A stretch of DNA of 63,801 bases, filler included, from Reticulomyxa filosa (taxonomy: Eukaryota; Protista; Foraminifera): assembly GCA_000512085.1 (NCBI GenBank). It is 21 parts of 21 records of this genome, joined end to end, with 100 filler letters (N's around TTAATTAATTAA, not from the genome) between each part and the next. Parts side by side here need not be neighbours in the genome. Positions count along the whole stretch, not along the records: positions 18,538 to 34,459 come from ASPP01025345.1; 20 more parts are not named here. One strand, 5' to 3'. Numbering within the stretch: position 1 is the stretch's first letter; each line of letters opens with the position of its first letter. Shown here one piece after another: positions 18,849 to 34,190 of the stretch. A program made the position numbers and the translations under genes. The notes under the pieces were generated by a model that was given only the letters and a program-made list of their open reading frames with translations, ran no database searches and was not told the DNA's origin.

Positions 18849-19790
18849 ATGCAAATGTATGTTTAATTTTTGTGATTTTATTAGCTTAACTTGGATGTTT
18901 TTAACTAGCTTTGCCAAAACTTTGACCGGAAAAACCATCACTTTGGATGTACAGCACAGCTACAAATACAAACGTGAAAGCCAAAATTCGGATAAGAAGG
19001 CATTCCTCCTGAGCAACGTCTAATTTTTGCCGGCAAACAATTGGAAGATGGCCAAACCTTGTGATTATAACATCCGAAAGGAAAGCATCTTGATTTGGTG
19101 TTGCGTTTGCGAGGTGGTGCAAATGTTAAGTTTGTACAGTAAAACTAAAATTTGTTTGCAGGCTTGTTGTTTTTTTAAGTAACTATTTTTTTTTTTGCTA
19201 GCTTAACTTCTTTTTTTGCTAGTAGTACCTTTTTTTTTACAAGTGGTAATTATTTTTTTTAAGTAGTACATTTTTTGTTATTGTGAACAAAATAGTTTTG
19301 TGAAGACTTTAACCGGAAAAACAATCACATTGGACGTGTGGAACCCAACACAATCCAAAACGCAAAAATTCAGGATAAAGAATTTATTCCTCCAGAACGG
19401 CAACGTTTAATCTTTGCAGGAAAGTAATTGGAAGACAGCCACACTCGACAAAAGGAAAGCACGTTACATTTGGTTCTCCGTTGTTTACGAAGTGGAGCAA
19501 TGCAAAATGTAAGTAGTTCTTTTTATTTTTTATGCATGAGTTGTTTTTTTTTTATACGTATGCGTGTTTTTTCCGAGATTCGTTACGTATTAAATTTGCT
19601 TTTTTGTTACTTTGAAAACAGTTTCGTGAAAAATTGCCAGCAAGACAATCACGTTGATGAACACAACGATACAACCCAAAACGTGAAAGCCAAAATCCAG
19701 GATAAAGAATTCCTCCAAACAACAACGACTGTCTTTGCAGAAAGGCAATTAGAAGATGGTCGCTTAAGTAATTACTATCCAAAGAAAGAA
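18849..19790 (+). pseudogene. Polyubiquitin pseudogene (three degenerate monomers with introns)
   Basis: Repeated [12 protein letters not shown] / NVKAKIQDKE / RLIFAGKQLEDG / KESTLHLVLR segments with frameshifts. Junctions read LRGG-A (19101-19121) and LRSG-A-MQ (19485-19505). Confidence 0.9.
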
Positions 19791-19959: not shown

Positions 19960-20900
19960 TTTTGCTCTAAGCGTCAACAAGCGCATTCACTTTTGCTCCT
20001 CCTGTATTTCTGAGCACGTCCTCAGAAACTAAGTTAGTTAATTGATCTGAGCTTTTCTCCGAATTGATTTCTAATTTCTCGCATCGACCATTTGAAGCAA
20101 GGGCAATATCTTTAAAATTTGCTTAGCTCGCATATCTACAAAGAAAGCATATACATTGATGTTTTCTTTCAGGATATTACATGTTTAAAAAATTGAATAT
20201 TAAAAAAAATGTTTTTGATCAATCTAGGAAAAAGTTATTATAAAACCAATTTCATATTTAAAGACTACAAAATTTGTATATATATTTAGAAAAAATTATT
20301 GCTAAATGTTTATTTTTCATGAATAGAATCGATAGAAAATTATCTGTTTCAAAGGAAAACTCACTTAACAATAGTGCCCACATCGAATAGTGTCCCAAAT
20401 TTTTATTATATGTATAAAGTAAATTTACATATGAATAAATAACAAAATATAACTCCTTTTTTGACATAAATTCGATTTGAACAAATTTTTCTTCTTGTAT
20501 TTGTAGTATTGAAGATCTAATATCGATTCCAGAAACATCATATTGAACTATAAATTTTTATTTTGTATTAGATGATGTAACAGCTATGTATTTTCAATTT
20601 CCTTTTTTAATTGTTCAAATGCTTCGTCATGTATTGTAGTCCATTTACAAATCAAATTTTGTACTTAATTTGCACTTTTTCTTCTGCTTTTTTTACTAAT
20701 TCAAATATTACCTTAATGTCAAAGTGATCTATGTCTTGTTTACTGGTGATTCTTGAACTTGGCAAAGAAGCTGTTACAACGCCAGAGTATATATCTTTTT
20801 CATCATATCACTTATGCGTTGACCCTTGAGTGCTTATTGCTTCTGCAACTTTGGCGTTGATTCGTATTTCTCGTCATTTTTATCTCTACTTGTGCTAGAA
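19960..20900 (-). pseudogene. Internally deleted relic paralog of the giant GTPase-SecA-vWA gene
   Basis: SKQDIDHFDIKVIFELVKK/AEEK (20670-20745) matches KQGEHFNIKLMLELVKKAEE of the giant gene. INVYAFFV..FKDIALASNGRCEKLEINSEKSSDQLTNLVSEDVLRNTGG (19970-20170) matches its C-terminal HAFYV..FEKIARISGGKCAELQINS..SDQLTDIVSTTILKHAGG. Confidence 0.8.
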
Positions 20901-21884: not shown

Positions 21885-24800
21885 TCAAATGTGCAATTTA
21901 GGTGTAAATTTGATTTTATAAGCCTCAACAAGCTCATCACCTCTCGATCCGCCAGCGTGTTTAAGAATTGTCGTAGAAACAATATCAGTTAATTGATCTG
22001 AGCCTTGCTCTGGGCCTTGATCTGAATTAATTTGTAATTCTGCACATTTACCACCTGAAATACGGGCTATTTTTTCAAAATGCCTTTTTGCTTGTTTTCC
22101 CACATAGAAGGCATGCACAGTGATGTTTCTTTTTTTAAGAAACCAAGTTCTTTTTTATAGTGAGTGGGAGAAGAGAATTCTGTATCTTTCCAATAGCTTT
22201 CTCCTTCGATCTGTCTTCTCTTTTCCACTTCCTTTCTTTTATTTGGTGGCATGTCTCCAATTAAAATAACTTGTGAAACTTCTATTTTTTTGGCTTGTGC
22301 ATTGACATAAGCGAGCCCAATTTCAATAGCTTCATTTCCCAGTCCATAATCTACACAAATGGTCTCCATAAACTTACGCAAATTATCAGGTTTCGATTCC
22401 CAGGGAGAAGCTTGCAAAATCATATCTTTAGGTGCATTGTAATTGCGATACACCACAAATTGCATCTCAAAGCAATTGGGAGGTAATCCATGTCCTTTTA
22501 AAATTATTGAAATTCGGTCAAACATAGTACAAACTGTGTTTTTTGCTTTTTGCAATAAATACTTCATGGAACCAGTTGCATCCATAAGCACTACTGTACG
22601 CGAAGCTTTTCTCTCTTCTGCTCCTTTGTTTCGCTCAAATAACATTTTCTTCACAGTATTTACTTCTTTTCTTTTTACCGATGCAATCAATTCTTCACTC
22701 GCTTTATGCTCTTTTGCAGCATATTTTATATATTTTTTATTCTCAGAGTATTGAGTTTTAAAGAATTCATTTCGCTTTGCATTGAGCATTGGATAAAGAC
22801 TATCCGATTTGCGTGCATTTTCTATTTCTATTTTGCTTGAAAATTTCTCAAGTAATTTATCACATAATACCAAACTGTAAGAACCAGATCCCCCTTGTCT
22901 GGCAGTACGCCCTTTGATTTGTACTTCCTCAGACAACTCTTCAGAAAGAAAGGTTTGAATCACATGTGGTCCACCATTGGAAGACACAATTTCATCACGA
23001 CAAACAAAGTCAGTTCCTCGTCCAAATGCTTTGGTGAACAATCCCACTTGGCCAGAACTGGTAGCACGCTTAATAAGGGATTCTTTCTCTTCGAACGAAT
23101 TTTCTTCAGTCATTACAATTGCATCATTTTTAATATCAGCAAAATTTGGTGATTCATAAAATTCCATTAATTGTTTTTTGGTCTCAAAGAACACCAATAC
23201 AGCTCTTTTTGTTCCTTGTGTTTTCCCAACAAGTCGATCATCAATTTCTTTTTTAAGAATAGTGAAATAATTATTTTCATCCACAATGAAAATGCTCCCT
23301 TTTTCTGCAAAGACGAGTCGGCTCTTGCCAAACAAAGATGGCAAATAAGTATGTTTGGAAATGTGATACCCTTTCTCCATCACTCCTTTTTCAGATGCGC
23401 TCAATGTCTCTAATGTTCCACTCACACCCATAATGCTATAAAAATGCTCGGGAACCGTTACATATGAGAAACTACCAATTTGAAATGAAAGGAATATGTT
23501 TTTTTTGAAGCTATCATCACTAATTTTATTTTGCTCGTGTTCATGATAATACGCAAATAAAGTCTTGTAACCATATCGAATATTGTAAGAAATACCATCT
23601 TGTTCTTTGTATCCAATTTTATCATTGCTTACTTGATATCCATGCGATTCAAAGACTTGGACATCATTCAACATGTCTTTAATCGCTTCATCCAACAATG
23701 AATCCCATCCTTTCAATACATTACAACATGCCTTGTATTCATTGGATTGTTTTACATTCTCCAATTTCAAAAACAACTCTCTCTTCTTCCAAATGAAGTC
23801 AATAAGTTTGGTAATGATATCATGGCGTAATGTTGCTGCAGGCGAATAGCAATTGCCATAAAAGTCTTTGCTGAAGAATACATCGACTTCGTCAATTAAA
23901 AGTACCTTTGAACGAGCAACTCGAGGAACATCACTAACTTTTTTCTCATCATCATTACCAGGAAGGATTAAATTTTCAACAAGTTTGCGCACATCACCTT
24001 CTTCATTAATAATTCTTTCACAAATCTTATTGAATGTGCCATAATAAATAAAATCAATTACACCCAAGATATTAAATAATGGCTCAAAACTTTTGAAATC
24101 TCTGCTGCTCAAGTATTCACTGTAGGACACACAACTTACATCAAAGCCAAATAATGCTAATATACAACAAGTAACCGCCAAGGTCACTGATTTCCCTTCT
24201 CCTGTTCCGATTTGAATCAAATGATTTGTCAAGCCTTTTGTTTTCTCTTCCACACCCAATATACGGAATATGGAAATCACTTGAGCTGGATGTGGTTGTA
24301 CCAAATAAGAGTCTTGATCTTTCACTCCTTGTGCATCATGATAGTATTGTGCATGTTGAAGTGTCCACAATGCAAAAATATTAGCTATCATTTCAGGAAT
24401 GCTGTTTCGAATACTTACATCCCAGTTTTCATCTTCTGGTATCTGTCTGATACCACGAGCACACATCCTTGCATTATTTGCAAATACGCCAAGTTGTTTG
24501 GAATTGTCCTTGGTTTTAATTAGATTGTCACGCACAAGTTGGCAATATTTTGTGTCAAAATTTTCAAACATTTTTTTTAATTTCGATTTGTCGATTGAAT
24601 CACCTTTGACTCTTATCTTGTCCAAAACATAGTTAATTCCATGTTCTTTGCTTTTTTTATTGAATAACGAAATCGAGTATCCTTTAAACACGCTATGCTC
24701 AGCAACAATCATTTTACCTATTCCGGTTGATTCTTTTTCCAATTGTAATGCTAATGCAGCAATACCAATACCACTGTTCTTTTTTTTGAAAGTATTCAAT

Positions 24801-27800
24801 AGTTCATCAATGAGTTTATTTATAACATCTTTGAAGTCAAAAATATTTATTGATATTATCTCCATTTTCACTAAGCAATTCACAAGATTTTCTGGTCGTA
24901 GATCATCTATTGCATTTTTTTCCAATTGGATGATTTGTTTGTTCACCATTGAGTTAATGACTTCAATTTGGGAGTTTGCAAAGTCTGAAAGGATTGAATA
25001 CTTTTGCATAAAAATAAAGCATTTGTACCAACGATTGAGGCAATTACAATCGGAGGGGGTCCACTTAGAAATGTTCATAGTGTCAATAGAGTTTTGTGTG
25101 TTTTGTTCTAATTGTTTTAAACGCTGTTCAAGTTTCTTAATATTTGTAACGTGGTTTTGCATTGAGACATTTGCTGCATAAAGTCAAGTGTATCTTTCAT
25201 GTTTTGGAAATATTGATTTAGTTCCATATCATTTGCTTTGGTGGTGGTCTCATTAATTATTCCTTCCATGATCATATCATTTAACATTTTCTCCAAATGA
25301 CTATTGAGAGTATTCATTATTTCCGAATACGTCCATAGATTGGAAGATGTGCTAAAGTCTTCAGGGATACCACAATCCATCTTTTTTTGTTTAAATGTTT
25401 TCAATTTTTGCTAAAAATTATCATCGCCAACTATTTTTATGATGTCTAACACTTTTTGTAAATCTTGAGCATTTTTTTGCACAATGTTGATATTGCATTT
25501 CTTTTCCAACGACGAAAAAGAGTTGGAGATTTTTCTATCTAATTCTTTGACTTTCTCGTTAAAATCAGACGGCATCACTTCATTAGCCTTATTTTTCATA
25601 TCTGCCTTAAAATCCATGCATTGAATGAAAAAGTCCAATAACTGTTCTATGGATTCTATTGTCTTGGGGCTAACTTCATAACGATCCAATACACCCAAAC
25701 TAGTTATTGTTTTTGTCGGAACTTTCCAAATTGATCAGTAAATGTGTTTCGAGTCGATTCGAAGCTGTTGTTAGCTGCGGATAGATTTAGTTTTGTTGAT
25801 TTAATATTGAGTAAATCTTTCAGATCCTTTAATACTCCAGTTACATCTTCGTTGGCCCATTTTTGATTTATCCTTTCAACCATATTTCGAATTATTATGG
25901 GTGCTTGGCGTTCAATCTCGTTTTTTTCAAGGTTTGTACATGTATCCAAGAAATAATTAATATGATCCACGTTTTTGGTATTTAATACTTCATCTGCATT
26001 ACGCATAGCTTTGTTGATTTTATCCTTAATTTCTGCTTCACTTTGTTTGATATCTGTATTGAGCATTTCCTTCATGTGATCAGGCAGAACTGCCATTACT
26101 GTCTTACATTGACGGATAAAATGTTGAGTTTGTATTAACGACTCTGTTTCCACATCTCTGCAAGCTGTTTCCAATTGAGCTCGAACCTCTTTAATAATAA
26201 TATCTTCAATTTCTTTCCATTCATTTTCATACTTTGCAGTGATAAATTTGGCATAAATTTCATTGGGTGTAGGTGAAGAGATATATGTAGTCAGTGGAGC
26301 ATTTTTAAATCGATCTACAGTCTCTTTCAATTTGTTTTCAATAGTGTTCTTAAGTTGGTTCACGCGATCCATGATTTCACTTTTTCTTCCGTGCTTCCCT
26401 TCTTTCTTTATGGTCTCCTTATTCGAAGAAATTAACTCATAACAATCCCTTAAAATGTCTGCCATGTCTTGAATAAAACTGATTCTTTTGTTTGCCTCTA
26501 AAAAATTCAAATTAGTCAATAACCTGTCGAATGTGTTTAATTCCGTTTCCATATTTTTTTTAATATCAGATTTAACTTTCTTTATTGTTCTAGCGATTTC
26601 TTTTTTGCCATCTCATTCATGAATTGACTGGCATTATGTGCTTCTTTGATATATTCTAGATTATTCTTCAGTTCCTTCAGATTTTTAATATCTACCTCGC
26701 TCTCCTCAAGTGGCAGTACCTTTATTTTTTTGGCCAAAGTATACAAATCTCTTGACCAAGAGGTTTTAATATCTTTGAATGCCTTTTTTTTATTTGGATC
26801 GTCGATTTGTTCAAGCTCATACATTTTTGTGCCAACGGTAGAATATCGACGATTTTTGATCGCTTCCAGTGCTGGTTTGATTTCAATCTCATCGCTGTAG
26901 ATTTTATTTTGGTACGTCGAAAATAGATCATGAAATTTGTGATTGGGTTGAGCAAAATCATCCAATTCACTAAAAGCTTTAGCAATTGCGATTTTTCTTT
27001 TCAATAATGTAGAGTTTGCTTCCATTGTCAACCCCATCATCTCGTCAGATAGATTCACATACATTCGTTTCAATCGTTTGTCAAATTGTCCAATTATATC
27101 TTGTGGAAAGTATGCAAATATTGTTGGATAATCTTTTTGCAGTTTTTTGACTTCAGTTAATCCATTGGAAACATCTCCGACCTCCTCAATCATGTTTGTA
27201 TCAATGTCGTTGTTATTATCTTTTTTTTCATCACTGCTCGGCGTTGTTCCACTTTCGATAAGAGTCAAAGAGTTGATTTGATTTTTAACAAAAATGGAAT
27301 ACTTTTGTAAAAATTCTTCCACCAAATTCAATGTGTTTGTGATTTCTTGTTTCAGAGAAACTACCCGCCTATTCTCTGTTTGTTTTTTTTCATCCTCATC
27401 ATTGCCACTTGTACCAAGAAGTTGACTTGTTATTGCATCAGCAGGGAAGGTGATGGCTTTGCATTCTTTCAAGTACTGCAATATCTTTACAGTTTTGGGT
27501 GCATTCAGTACTTCAAAGGTATATCCAGAATTTTTCTTTAATTTTGCAATTTCACGTTCGCATTGACGAATCTTGTCATTCAATTCTTTTTCATTATTGA
27601 TTAATCTTTGTATATCACTCTCTACAAATTCGTGGCTCTTTAATGATTCACGAACACTTGCCAACGACATCTCTCCTTTTTGTAATTGTTTTTCGTATTC
27701 TCTCTTTACTTGTTCGTCCTTGTCTAGTTTTTCTTTTAATTCGTTCATTTGTTTTTGATAACTTTCATTCATTCCCTTTGCTTCTTGTTTCAACTTTTCC

Positions 27801-30800
27801 GAATTCTGTTGTCCTTCTTCTGTTTTCTCTTCCACTCCTTCTGTGGGCCACTTGCTTGCTATTTTCAAATGTATCACTGCTTCCTTGTCGGATGTCAGCT
27901 GCGGAGATGTCGGCAACAAATCGGGGATGGAATTTTCATTTTCAGATTCTTGTTTGATTTCTCCTATTTGCGAAAGTATTTCTTGGCTTTCTTTTGTATT
28001 ATCTTTATACTGTTGATCAGGCATAATCATGATTTTGGTTAATTCTTCTATTTTGGTTTTCGTCGCATTGATTTTTAAATCAAGATCTTTTGCATCCTTA
28101 AACTCCATTTTCTGTAAATACAAATTGGTAGCACGGATATCTTCAGCACACAATTTAAGTTGGATCAAACTCTCTCTCATCTTTTTTTGATTTGTCACAT
28201 TTTTTGCTTCCAACGCAAATTCACGACGAATTGTAGCTAACGTGACTCGCACAGATTGCTCCAATGGACCAGCTACTTTTTGACGAAAAGGGATTAGTTC
28301 TGGAATGATCGCTTCCAAACAACGCAAATGTTCAAGATGAGCAAAGACATTACGGACGTCTTTGAAATGCTCAGGATGGTCTAGATCAAGTTCCAATTCT
28401 TGACTTAATTGTTGCAATTCATGTAAATGCGATATTAGCTTTTGTTTGATGGTATCTATCAAACTACCGCTATCATCTTCTTGACGTTCATTAATCCACT
28501 TCGAATTGCTCACACAAAGGACACACTCATACAATCGATTGTAATCAATCGATACATTTTGTCTGTTGAGAGAGCCAAGTATTACATCAATGTCTTTTTG
28601 GACTTCACGTACAAACGCATTTATTTTTTCGATAGTTTGATAATATTGACTTCCCGTCCTTTCTTTTACTACTTTCATGCCTCGAAGTTCTTCCATCACC
28701 AAAATCAATTTTTTGATTTCATCAAATGCTTGATACCTTTTTTTTTTAAACAGGTTCAAAATCTCTTGTCCAACTTTTTCAAAATATTCAATTATTTCAT
28801 TTACAAATGAACGAACTATTTCTTTTGTTGACTTGTCAAGTCCAACATATTCACAAGGTAATTCAAACGTACTTGCTGCTTCCTCCAAGAGAAAAACGTT
28901 CGTTTTCAAGATGTGGCCTTCATTTTTGTCGAGTTTTTCAATTCGGACGTTAATCACTTTTTTCCTTTCTTCTTTTTCTTTATTTTCTTCAATATTGTCT
29001 ACTCTTTCCTCTTTGATTGTTTTTTTCAACACATCACGTCCTTCATTTGCAATATGATCGAGATGAACCAATAATTCATTTTCCAAATCTTTGATCTTTT
29101 CTTTAATATCTACGAAAGAACGAAAATGTTCTTGAAGAATTAAAACCTTTCCAATTTTCTCCACTTCTTTTCGAAACTTCAAAAATTCATTCTTTTTAAT
29201 GCATTCCTTTGCTTCATCCACACAATCTACAACTCTCTTTTTCAACTTTTGACACGCTTCATTGTAAACATTACGAAAATTAGGGAAACAGGCTTGCACT
29301 TGTGCCATTTTGTCCAAATGAACTTGTAATGTACTTTCACCTTCCTTTTCATCTTCGATTGCGTTGATCAACTGTTTCATTTGTTCATTGATGTTTTGAG
29401 TTAAAGACTCGCCACAAATTGCATCTTTCAAATGAATTCGCAATTCATTTGCAGCAACAAGTTCATTTACAACTTTCTGATAAGCCAACATATCATCTTT
29501 ACTTATTGAATGTGGAGATGCAATTCGTTTATTGAGTATTGATTTGGCATCTTCATATTTTTGATTCCATTCATTGGTCAATTTTTTCACACAATCATTG
29601 TATTCACTTTCAATCGTTGAAAGTTTCAATATATTATTCAGGTCTGTAAGTTCATCTAACTTTATTTTAGCAACATGATAATCTCCATTTTGATAAGCCA
29701 ACCAAATATCTTCTTTGTGCTTTTGCACTTGCATATGAACTACTCCTTTAGAATTTTCGGAAACAAAGGGTTGAAAGACCTCTCCAGGTTCTTTAATGAA
29801 ATCCTTTATATCAGAAAGTTCCTCCAACAAATTATTTGGTGAATCTTTCAGTAAATTTGGTGCATTCAGTCCTTTTCTTGTCTTTTTGACAATATCTACC
29901 AAAATGGATTTGAACCCTTTATCTTGTTCGTCTTTAATACTATCGTAAGCTGTCTTCACATGTCCGTTCATATATTGTCTTTCATTTTCAGGCATTTTGG
30001 TAAACACATATGAGAATGCACTGAGATGATTTTCGATGGACGGAATAATAGATACGAGCGTACGAGCTAAATCTTTGACACAGTTCATTCGATTGCCCAA
30101 GGCAGTGTAACTAATCAACACTACAGGTTTAACACTTTTACAATTTTGCAATGCTCGAATGACTCCAATGCCATTGGCAACATCAACTTCAGGACCACTC
30201 GTATCTTCAAATCCAGGAGTGTCACAAAGGACAACACTATCTATGTCTACAAGTATATTCATCCCTTTTAAATTGATGGGAACAGCTGTAATATATCGTG
30301 TCTCAGATTCTGCCTTTGCACTTGTACGAACATTAGCCAATGCTTTATTTTTGATTTGCACTGGGGCTATATGGCGTACTCCATCTACAATTTGTTCCTT
30401 CATAGTCGATCCAGCTAGAAAATGGATTAAAGTAGACTTGCCAGCTCCAGTACCTCCCAACAACAATATCACATTTTGATTTTGAATTGTATTTGCTGCT
30501 TCCTCTGCTTTTTTCACCAACTCCAACATTAATTTTATGTTGAAGTGCTCTCCTTGCTTTTTTGCGAAACTCGTAGATGGAGTGAAGGGAGGATTTATTT
30601 GAGGCGGTCCATCCAATGCGTATTTCGTTTCATCTTCATTGTCATTCAATTCTTGTTTTTCTTTTGAGGTAACTATATGTCCATCAACTCCTGGCTCCAT
30701 TGTGCTGTTCTTCGGTAAGTCTAAACAGATCACTTGAAGTTTCAAAGACCATTTATTACTGTTATGTTGGTCATATCGATCAGCCCAAATACGTTTCAAG

Positions 30801-31370
30801 TCATCTGCAGTCTGTATTTTATTAGCTTGATTTTCGTCCTCTAAATGCTCTTCATCTGATAGTCCTCCAATCAATTGTTTCAAATCTTCAAAATATTTGT
30901 TCCAATTTTTTTGTTCCATTTCACCATAAAAATTTGGATCATTTGAGTCTTTTGGACACCATGTCATTTTCTTGTTTTCTTTTGTTATTTCCAAGCATCT
31001 CTTTTTTTATTATTATTGTTTATTAATATTTTATTGTTTACTTTTTTAAAGGAAGAAAGAAGACCACACACACCATTTTTAATGTGTAGGATGTTGCCTT
31101 TTTATCTTTAATAAGTACATTCCAAAGATCAATAAAATCTTCATCATTGTCGACATGATCGTCAATATTATCTTTTTTTACCAAAAGAAATGAGGATGTT
31201 GTTGCTAGATGGAACTTTTCTTTGATTGTATTCAACAATCCTTCCCAATTTTTCTCTTTCACACTATCTGGCATTCTTCCATCATTTCGTAGGTCAGTTG
31301 CCTTAAATATTGCTTTTTCATGTCCACAGGATTCAATAGCAAAGTGTTTGTCCTTGTATTTTGTTTGCAT
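21885..31370 (-). CDS. Giant (~3,100 aa) multidomain protein: 2x PB1-like modules, P-loop GTPase, helical/coiled-coil region, SecA-type ATPase, vWA; reading frame interrupted as assembled
   Basis: An in-frame GT-AG intron at 31001-31073 joins the first exon to ORF 26582-30994. GTPase motifs: LLGGTGAGKST, SET, LCDTPGFEDT, VFTK. SecA motifs: IGTGEGKS, VSYSEYLSSRD, YGT, LIDEVDVF, GVSGT, FGRGTDF, GGPHVIQTF, QIKGRTARQG. vWA MIDAS-like VLMDATGSM, then VILIGDMPP. Four +1-nt homopolymer corrections and one in-frame TAG (25411) join six ORFs. Confidence 0.88.
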
Positions 31371-31894: not shown

Positions 31895-34190
31895 CAAGGA
31901 GGTGCCAAAAGACTGGTTAAAAATTTGGGATTTAGGAGAATAAAAACAAGATTTTCTAGCCTCAGGTGTCTCAAGTGTAACAGATTTAAAATACAAAAGC
32001 AGAGGAGGAAATAGCAGAATTGGCAGGACCAGAAAAAATAAATATGAAACCATCAGGTCAAAAAAAATTTGTAAACGAAAGAAAAGGAAATATGGATGAT
32101 ACAAAAAAGAAGGAATTTAGAAAATGGCTTGCATCAAATCGATGGGAAGTATACGAAAGTAAATGTGTAGAAAACGGAGTGACTAATTTAGACGACTTAA
32201 AACAATTGAAAACAGAGAAAGAAATTTTAGAATTAGCAGGAACAGGCAATATTGATATGAAAGATATTGATAAACAAAAATTTGTAAAGGCTGTTTTAGC
32301 TCTTAATTTAAAAAATAGCATTTCTGAAGATTTAAGAGAATGGCTTGCAGCGAATAAACTAGAATAATATGAAAGTAAATTTATTGAAAATGAAGTGATA
32401 TTTGGATGATCTGAAAATACTAAAAAAAGAAGAATTTTTGGAGTTGGCAGAAAATCTAAATATGGGGGTTATGCATCAACAAAGATTTGTAACTGCGGCA
32501 CTGGCTCTACATTTAAATAATGGACCTGGCTTTGACCAAGATGAAAAGAATGCGTTTGTTGAAAACAAATAAATGAAAATGACGATATTTTATTAGATAA
32601 TGAATTAGAGGGGTATAAAAATTTTAAGGAAGAATTGGAGTATGTATATTGTATCATACATATACACATATATGTATATACATATAAAGTATATAAATCT
32701 AAATGTTTTTTTTAACTTATTAATAGAAATGAAGTAAAAAAGATCAAGCGAATGATCAAAAATGATACTTATGTTAAGTTTGTCTATAAAAACCTAATTT
32801 TGACAATTGGATATTTTACAATTAAAAAAAAAATGTGAATAACAGGAATTCGAATCAGATTTCGCAAAAACTTTTGTAAATGCATTGGATATAATAAAAG
32901 ACATGACATCAGAATTTCATTGTTATCCTTATCAGCAATCATTGGCAAGCAACATAGAATATTTGTCCAAGGACATAACAATGACTCGTATTATGATGTC
33001 ATTTTTGTCAAATTTGTCATTTCGATTAATGGAATTTGCTCCTGCTACCAATCCAAAAGGTAAATCGTTATTCAAAACTGTGAAAATGTCATGCCAAGAC
33101 ATTACTAATAACCCATAGAGATAAACAGATATGTTACTGAATATGTTGGCATTTTGAAAAATCTTCGAGATTCGATAACTGATTGTAATAAAAATAGTAA
33201 AAATATGTTTTCATTTCAATCACCAGTAGAAAGCTTTAACAATTCTGTTGAAATGTTAAAGATATTTTATAATAAACGTAAACCATTTTTGATAAAAATG
33301 CGAAACAATTACAATGAAAAATATAAAATGATGTCAAATTTCTTATTACCTGCCAATATAAGTGGTATTCTGGAAAATTTGGAAACATCTGAAAAAAAAT
33401 ATTTTGAAATGCAATCAGAGTATACAAAAAAAGAAGAGGAAATGAACAAAGAAATAGAAACAAAAAAAGATATATTTGATGAAATTATATACAAGTTAAA
33501 TGAAGAAATAGATAAGCTACAAAAGAATTTGGAAGAACTTCAAAATCAAAATCAAGAGAGATGGCAATGGCAAACAATAAAGCTAATGCTGAACATACTA
33601 AACAAAGGAAAGAAAGTATACAAAAGCAATTACAAGTATTGGCAAATGAAATACAAAATGAACACAAAAATGAAGAATCAACAATTGAAAATGCAATTAC
33701 TGAACTTAAACAAGCAGAAAGAGAAAGATAACAACAATTACAAAACTATTTGGATACTTGTGAAACGCAATCACGACAATATAACCAGCTTAAAGAAGAA
33801 ACTTCTTCAGTACGAAAGGAAATAGAGGAGAAAAAAAAAGCATTAACTGAAAAACAAGCCCTTTCACGTGAGGAAATACATAAAAAAGAAAAATATTGTA
33901 AACAATATAAACAAGACTTATTGCAAGCATATCTTACAAAAAAATCAAAATTCAAACAAGAATATGAAGAAAATAAAAAAAAATGAAAGACATTTTAGAA
34001 GTAGTTGGAGTGCAAAAAGGTTTGATCATTCAATTTTTGAATTTGGCCGAGTATCTTAAAAAGGCAATGCACAAATATCACCTATTGAAAAAAACTGATA
34101 TACATTTTAATTCAAGCACAACAAGTGCGACAATTATGTCCATCTCTTGCTGATATTTGGAAAGGTGGAGTGTTAGAAAAGTATGTCTAA
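31895..34190 (+). pseudogene. Triple SAM-domain + helical/coiled-coil protein gene (disrupted), divergent from the giant gene
   Basis: Three tandem SAM-like units (KDWLKIWDLGE*KQDFLASGVSSVTDLK; RKWLASNRWEVYESKCVENGVTNLDDLKQL..KQKFVKAVLAL; REWLAANKLE*YESKFIENEV..LDDLKIL) are followed by introns and a long coiled coil. Several in-frame stops and frameshifts. Confidence 0.75.

Follow-up and report, generated by a model that had tools for sequence, protein, structure and literature searches.

A conserved GTPase–SecA motor–vWA giant protein of Reticulomyxa filosa, patchily spread among eukaryotes and present in a few bacteria

Textbook accounts present SecA as a motor of bacteria and plastids that functions only together with SecY. 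The subject of this work is a giant gene of the foraminifer Reticulomyxa filosa in which a GTPase, a long helical rod, a SecA-like motor and a vWA domain follow one another. The gene lies on a contig of 15,922 bp inside the window, which is the whole stretch of DNA that was analysed (63,801 nucleotides, filler included). It runs on the minus strand over about 3,138 codons, as exon 1, one intron and exon 2 (window 31370-21885), and in the current annotation it is split into three gene calls, with the GTPase half annotated as RFI_29278. The architecture is real and conserved; among the eukaryote-like SecA proteins, a loosely known group, it has apparently not been described before, and the window copy is damaged. 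Reticulomyxa has at least 14 paralogs, this locus being one of them, and they belong to a conserved family that is patchily pan-eukaryotic and also found in a few bacteria. The significance of the family is that a SecA motor and clamp occur in a conserved giant protein across many eukaryotes, coupled to an immunity-type GTPase.

Long secA-domain genes have been described before. In 2013, PMC3639933 described a eukaryotic clade of such genes, with carriers among insects, Daphnia, Tetrahymena, Polysphondylium and Salpingoeca; it reported their transfer to Wolbachia and Amoebophilus and argued for a eukaryote-to-bacterium direction for related secA genes. PMC5062602 lists genes of this kind in phage WO. 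Like the family described here, these genes (wBol1_1091/1092 of Wolbachia phage WO among them) are very long and intron-poor, with secA in the C-terminal half; expansions, exchange with intracellular bacteria and the lack of an assigned function are further points in common. Neither a GTPase nor a vWA domain is mentioned for them in the accessible portions of these papers, which sets them apart from the present family. Compared by these descriptions only, they probably form another subfamily, since a tblastn search of a phage collection with the motor gave no phage WO match at E 0.01. A preliminary inspection of this DNA, referred to below as the sequence-only reading, knew of no functional characterisation of the architecture. 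The literature agrees with it: no paper on the GTPase–rod–SecA–vWA arrangement or on any function of it was found in a search outside which most subscription papers lay, and database names are automatic only.

The motor is of the SecA type by sequence, fold and profile. The broken, spliced gene was searched as separate pieces. In the window piece, Pfam returned SecA_DEAD (E 1.8e-9) and Helicase_C (4e-5), and the top sequence match in the PDB was SecA (E 2.4e-9). The structure of the SecA–vWA part was taken from an AlphaFold model of the relative P0051, which is 53% identical to the window protein (predicted local distance difference test, pLDDT, 87). Foldseek matched this model to SecA with an E-value of 1e-19, compared with 3e-8 for DinG, and the Z-score for SecA was 30.1 over 525 residues, compared with 21.6 for eIF4A, the best DEAD-box protein. 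The first 24 matches by Z and the first 36 by Foldseek E-value are all SecA; the next matches are DinG, DDX21, MDA5 and eIF4A. The family profile aligns with residues 98-596 of E. coli SecA, PPXD included (hhalign probability 98.9), and both this alignment and the model place the PPXD as an insertion in the first nucleotide-binding domain (NBD1), as in SecA. A 42-residue helix (H562-603) follows NBD2 in the model, and the structural alignment to the SecA scaffold extends through it. The SecA-specific motifs are kept, namely Walker A TGEGK, motif Ia YLxxRD, DEVD, GRGTD and QxxGRxxRQG. The full motif set claimed by the sequence-only reading is present, and all the motifs it cited lie where it had placed them, on the minus strand. 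Identity as a DEAD-box RNA helicase is ruled out by the fold ranking, by SecA as the top sequence match and by the presence of the PPXD.

The comparison with canonical SecA and SecA2 has two sides. The order NBD1-PPXD-NBD2-helical scaffold, all motor motifs and the fold (Z 30) are shared. The giant protein differs in its N-terminal extension of about 2,100 amino acids (aa), which carries the GTPase, in forming a separate clade and in being without SecA_SW, the wing and two-helix finger; no SecA_SW match was obtained in the window piece or in the relatives, and a vWA domain is found there instead. The giant protein is thus not a canonical SecA, though the motor and clamp are kept. Judging from the predicted structure, the vWA fold occupies the position of the wing and finger. 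The vWA domain itself, proposed from the motif DATGS, is borne out. Pfam gave no vWA match in the window piece; VWA_4 was matched in 7 of 26 relatives, vWA structures appear among the fold matches of the P0051 model, and DxTxS and the later acidic residues of the metal-ion-dependent adhesion site (MIDAS) are invariant in all 26.

In Rea1/midasin and in the MoxR-vWA pairs, an NTPase motor is likewise paired with a MIDAS-bearing vWA domain, and Rea1 has a long helical linker. The giant protein resembles them in its motor and vWA grip, and Rea1 also in its linker. It differs in that the motor belongs to superfamily 2 (SF2) and is SecA-like, not AAA+, and in that a GTPase is added; the likeness is one of analogy, not homology. 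MoxR-vWA pairs are known from conflict systems (PMC8195603).

The GTPase and the start of the rod (window 30562-28163) gave a confident AlphaFold2 model with a pLDDT of 89.7. It shows an AIG1-type G-domain fold with G1, G3 and G4-like motifs, and its nearest structure is GIMAP7 (Z 13.6, root-mean-square deviation 3.0, 184 aligned residues), followed by GIMAP2, GIMAP4 and Toc34. This upholds the assignment to P-loop GTPases of the AIG1/GIMAP type, for which Pfam gave no AIG1 match, only MMR_HSR1 below the cutoff (E 7e-4). A PADLOC search returned one weak GTPase match only. Identity to the GIMAP, AIG1 and Toc34 proteins is 15-19%, and the giant protein differs from them in its fusion of the G domain to a long rod and an ATPase and in being without a membrane anchor; neither a convincing transmembrane segment nor a CaaX box could be recognised. 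Endosymbionts are known to have GIMAP-like GTPases as effectors (PMC3417536). Between the GTPase and the motor, where about 1,800 aa of helical sequence had been predicted, there is an all-helical rod with internal repeats of about 170 aa; the family median of this spacer is 1,656 aa. P0049 (2,340 aa; L095 228-7250) contains a GTPase that belongs to this class but is more distant, combined with an unrelated helical region, a stretch that looks OTU-like by eye and tandem AAA+ ATPases. It is a parallel GTPase-plus-motor design with a motor of a different type.

At the N-terminal end, two PB1-like modules had been proposed, and this was not confirmed, as Pfam, PDB profiles and the ESM Atlas gave no PB1 match for either. 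The two modules are weakly alike (hhalign E 0.004) and are confined to the Reticulomyxa paralogs. N-termini vary across the family, with few known domains among 105 members: a U-box in three, all bacterial, and a RickCE/Ulp1-like peptidase in two. A helical module that starts with MPxCxE is conserved immediately before the GTPase. It occurs 79 times among the fetched proteins (P0016-P0107 and others), including those of bacteria, and its place in Reticulomyxa is taken by the two lineage-specific modules.

The family was searched with the motor–vWA piece, which gave 1,018 clusters (50% identity) at E < 1e-30. Of the relatives fetched, 139 reach 2,600 aa or more, and 132 of these carry GTPase, SecA and vWA together; this order holds in each of the 143 three-domain proteins. 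The motifs are similarly constant (141 long members: DEVD in 141, MIDAS in 138, Walker A in 137, G1 in 133). Two choanoflagellates, Helgoeca (3,535 aa) and Microstomoeca (2,809 aa), provide complete transcript-derived open reading frames, so one mRNA can encode the whole protein. Separate GTPase and SecA genes are rejected for the family by this and by the fixed domain order, and the fusion on one polypeptide proposed for the window is real and family-wide. Overall, neither separate genes in the family, nor a grouping with DEAD-box proteins, nor membership in a characterised family was found. The family occurs in Rhizaria, alveolates, stramenopiles, amoebozoans, discobans, choanoflagellates and some animals. 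The named carriers are Reticulomyxa, bdelloid rotifers, Hydra, Tetrahymena, Blepharisma, Arcella, Epipyxis and Diplonema, in addition to choanoflagellates, and the distribution among named matches is patchy. Expansions are seen in Reticulomyxa (14 annotated proteins in the GTPase search, with tandem copies), bdelloids, Hydra and ciliates; in Blepharisma, three SecA_DEAD genes form a cluster within 32 kb. With a divergent family member as the query, two matches only were obtained.

What such a protein might do can be proposed from comparison of sequences. There is perhaps an even chance that it serves in host–microbe conflict, as a machine that is anchored by its GTPase and pulls on polypeptides. 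In its GTP state, the GTPase would dock or dimerise on a target membrane (a phagosome, a symbiont vacuole or a microbial surface), like GIMAP and Toc34, and the rod would reach across to the target. The MIDAS of the vWA domain may grip an acidic residue of a substrate protein, and the SecA motor could then hold the chain in its clamp and, driven by ATP, pull, unfold or extract it with no SecY channel involved. The working would be comparable to that of Rea1/midasin or MoxR-vWA pairs, with a SecA motor in place of theirs. The role would be cell-autonomous defence in bacteria-eating eukaryotes and that of a host-directed effector in intracellular bacteria. A conflict role is suggested by the expansions, the patchy spread among bacterivores, the variable N-termini, the ubiquitin-system add-ons and the presence in intracellular bacterial lineages. 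A more specific form of the proposal is tentative: an undescribed class of single-chain, GTPase-gated, channel-independent polypeptide pullers in which a MIDAS grip replaces the SecA finger, serving defence in bacterivores and acting as a TPR-chaperoned counter-effector (TPR, tetratricopeptide repeat) in intracellular bacteria. If such pullers are real, they would serve bacterivorous eukaryotes of at least five supergroups. If the proposal is true, it would give the eukaryotic secA-domain genes noticed in 2013 their first concrete, testable function, and copies in Tetrahymena, Hydra, bdelloids and choanoflagellates make it testable in laboratory organisms.

Several points weigh against this proposal. 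The mechanism and the conflict role both come from sequence and model comparison, and the SecA–vWA model was built on P0051, not on the window protein. The two-helix finger, which pushes the chain in SecA, is apparently absent, so processive pulling is not assured. The lead of GIMAP over other GTPases is narrow (Z 13.6 vs 12.7), and most N-termini are without a known domain. The use of a SecA–vWA query biases the set of relatives toward that pair. In addition, the ratio of nonsynonymous to synonymous substitution rates (dN/dS), about 0.33 in the motor and 0.58 in the rod, indicates purifying and not positive selection.

Strong conservation and purifying selection would also be expected of a housekeeping remodeller that works in protein quality control or membrane tethering. 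Here, the GTPase would sit on an organelle, the rod would be a tether and the motor–vWA part would extract the cell's own proteins, a role with which the Toc34-like match and the helical-bundle repeats of the rod, with their weak Exo70 match (E 0.004), are consistent. Such genes are, however, not typically patchy in spread, as this family is among its named matches, nor are they typically expanded into many copies, shared with bacteria or variable at the N-terminus, as it also is, and this alternative seems rather unlikely. It is less probable still that the protein is a nucleic-acid-dependent ATPase or sensor, comparable to RIG-I or DinG and directed against viruses or mobile elements, with its SecA likeness a matter of ancestry only. 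The fold matches ranking after SecA are of this type, but the SecA-specific motif Ia, PPXD insertion and scaffold helix are kept, and the nearly invariant MIDAS points to protein ligands.

The protein is not solely eukaryotic, as had been assumed. When 185,579 prokaryotic species genomes were scanned with a pattern, about 13 proved to hold close members, belonging to Legionellales, Gammaproteobacteria and Chlamydiae, with two contigs possibly misbinned; several of the carriers come from lineages that live inside protists. The bacterial copies sit among ordinary bacterial genes, and no sec genes were seen among the annotated neighbours of these loci. More distant SecA-like proteins, with neither GTPase nor vWA, are found in Legionella, Coxiella, Chlamydiae and Mycoavidus. 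The SecA-like effectors and giant proteins of Legionella, Chlamydiae, Mycoavidus, Megaira and Omnitrophota share with the family a divergent SecA motor and, in several cases, a host-associated or predatory lineage. They differ in having only 22-30% identity and neither a GTPase nor a vWA domain, and the Omnitrophota giant proteins are also without scaffold and wing. The tree was built from 92 motor cores with three canonical SecA rows, plastid SecA being left out and eight family rows and several others skipped for missing anchor motifs. In it, the family forms one clade (Shimodaira–Hasegawa-like approximate likelihood ratio test 100; branch length 2.45 changes per column) separate from canonical SecA; the SecA-like bacterial proteins included, those of Legionella and Chlamydiae, also fall outside. 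The ATPase does not group with SecA/SecA2.

Within the clade, bacterial members are scattered over several places and make up most of the deepest branches. An approximately unbiased (AU) test on 23 rows does not reject a eukaryote-only clade (p-AU 0.054), and for this reason the direction and number of transfers are not claimed. The branching order is one of the points in favour of a mainly bacterial secreted effector or toxin, accompanied by a TPR chaperone and a truncated-paralog antidote, of which the eukaryotic copies would be repeated captures kept as weapons or selfish genes. In six loci (L001, L002, L006, L008, L013 and L087) a TPR gene directly follows the giant gene, truncated paralogs without a motor follow in L001, L002 and L007 (one in L002 with a degenerate P-loop), and the eukaryotic copies are intron-poor. 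Copies and lineages are, however, far more often eukaryotic, the Hydra gene spans 103 kb, and to the AU result is added the opposite direction of transfer argued for related secA genes in PMC3639933; such an origin is improbable. A viral origin is rejected, with no member locus in IMG/VR, only weak SecA-like matches in the phage collection, and only generic vWA and helicase folds in BFVD.

The bacterial gene order is the giant gene, the TPR gene, and then a truncated GTPase–rod paralog or a conserved gene of about 360 aa with no assigned function (L001 13905-17908; L002 9982-13601; L087 19122-20794; L006; L008; L013; L007 12940-14799). Variants without the vWA domain (L014, L015, L017, L018) and without the GTPase (L010, L022) were observed. 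In the ciliate symbiont Ca. Megaera polyxenophila, a plasmid (L091 1-8793) carries two giant genes with SecA-like domains in tandem.

A separate question is whether the window copy is an intact gene damaged by assembly errors or a recent pseudogene. The gene is nearly intronless, as proposed, with one 73-nt intron; it is not one continuous frame, with four frameshifts and one TAG in the assembly (Table 1). Frameshifts 1-3 are one-base losses relative to the paralog RFI_06773, in which the TAG is a sense codon, and none of the alternative genetic codes rejoins the frame. The number of lesions, five in 9.4 kb where 26.8 kb of paralog sequence has 2 (Poisson p 8e-4), would suit a pseudogene, as would the fact that one lesion is a substitution and that the adjoining polyubiquitin and repeat genes are broken too. 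One-base errors in homopolymer runs are the usual error of pyrosequencing. Each of the four frameshifts falls within a run of 4-7 A's (chance about 2e-4), which fits such error, though slippage likewise favours runs. The catalytic motifs are intact, and departures at conserved columns are not in excess (GTPase 0/26, vWA 0/34, motor 4/118 with a family median of 5). The dN/dS of the window branch is 0.33-0.35 for motor and vWA, on par with 0.31 for the sister paralog, although a very recent loss would leave no trace in this ratio. On balance, the evidence leans slightly toward an intact gene, and a pseudogene is nearly as probable.

Table 1. Parts and lesions of the giant gene, with window coordinates.
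Feature	Position	Strand	Remark
Exon 1, N-terminal module 1, 99 aa, Reticulomyxa-specific	31074..31370	-	PB1/ubiquitin-like fold unconfirmed; no family match
Intron, 73 nt, phase-0, GT..AG	31001..31073	-	Same two flanks joined in paralog gene models
Exon 2	31000 to TGA at 21887-21885	-	
N-terminal module 2, weakly like module 1	30716..31000	-	No family match
GIMAP/AIG1/Toc34-like GTPase	29801..30520	-	Predicted structure and conserved columns
GTPase motifs	G1 GGTGAGKST 30457-30431; G2-like SETRYI 30307; G3 DTPG 30223; G4-like FTK 30004	-	
Long all-helical rod, ~170-aa internal repeats	24300..29800	-	Contains three frameshifts and the TAG
SecA-like SF2 ATPase: NBD1, PPXD-like insertion (~23845-23459), NBD2	22830..24295	-	
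Motor motifs	TGEGKS 24205-24188; SEYLSSRD 24121; DEVD 23893-23882; GRGTDF 23023; GGPHVI 22975; QIKGRTARQG 22921-22892	-	
Long helix after NBD2, SecA helical scaffold equivalent	22622..22829	-	P0051 model and structural alignment
C-terminal vWA, MIDAS-type DxTxS (DATGS 22582-22568), TGA 21887-21885	21885..22621	-	
Frameshift 1, A6 run	26601..26606	-	One base fewer than paralog
Frameshift 2, A5 run	25710..25714	-	
In-frame TAG adjoining T5 run	25411..25413	-	Sense codon in paralog
Frameshift 3, A4 run	25155..25158	-	
Frameshift 4, A7 run	22136-22130	-	Inside vWA domain
Broken extra copy of vWA C-terminal end, downstream of gene	19970..20170	-	tblastn E 7e-8

Three further genes are seen on the plus strand. 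At window 18870-19790 lies a three-unit polyubiquitin gene, decayed by many frameshifts and stops. The gene at 31990-32570, divergent from the giant gene, has SAM-like repeats by eye without a Pfam match and contains an in-frame TAA and frameshifts. A coiled-coil-like gene at 33112-34000 is apparently frameshifted and has a weak Dam1 match only. Three Reticulomyxa loci have additional copies of the vWA C-terminal end downstream of the giant gene, namely the window locus, L092 (7125-8071, called there as a gene of 356 aa) and L093 (6051-6377). These copies may represent tandem duplicates that have decayed, or else cassettes that supply a spare C-terminus.

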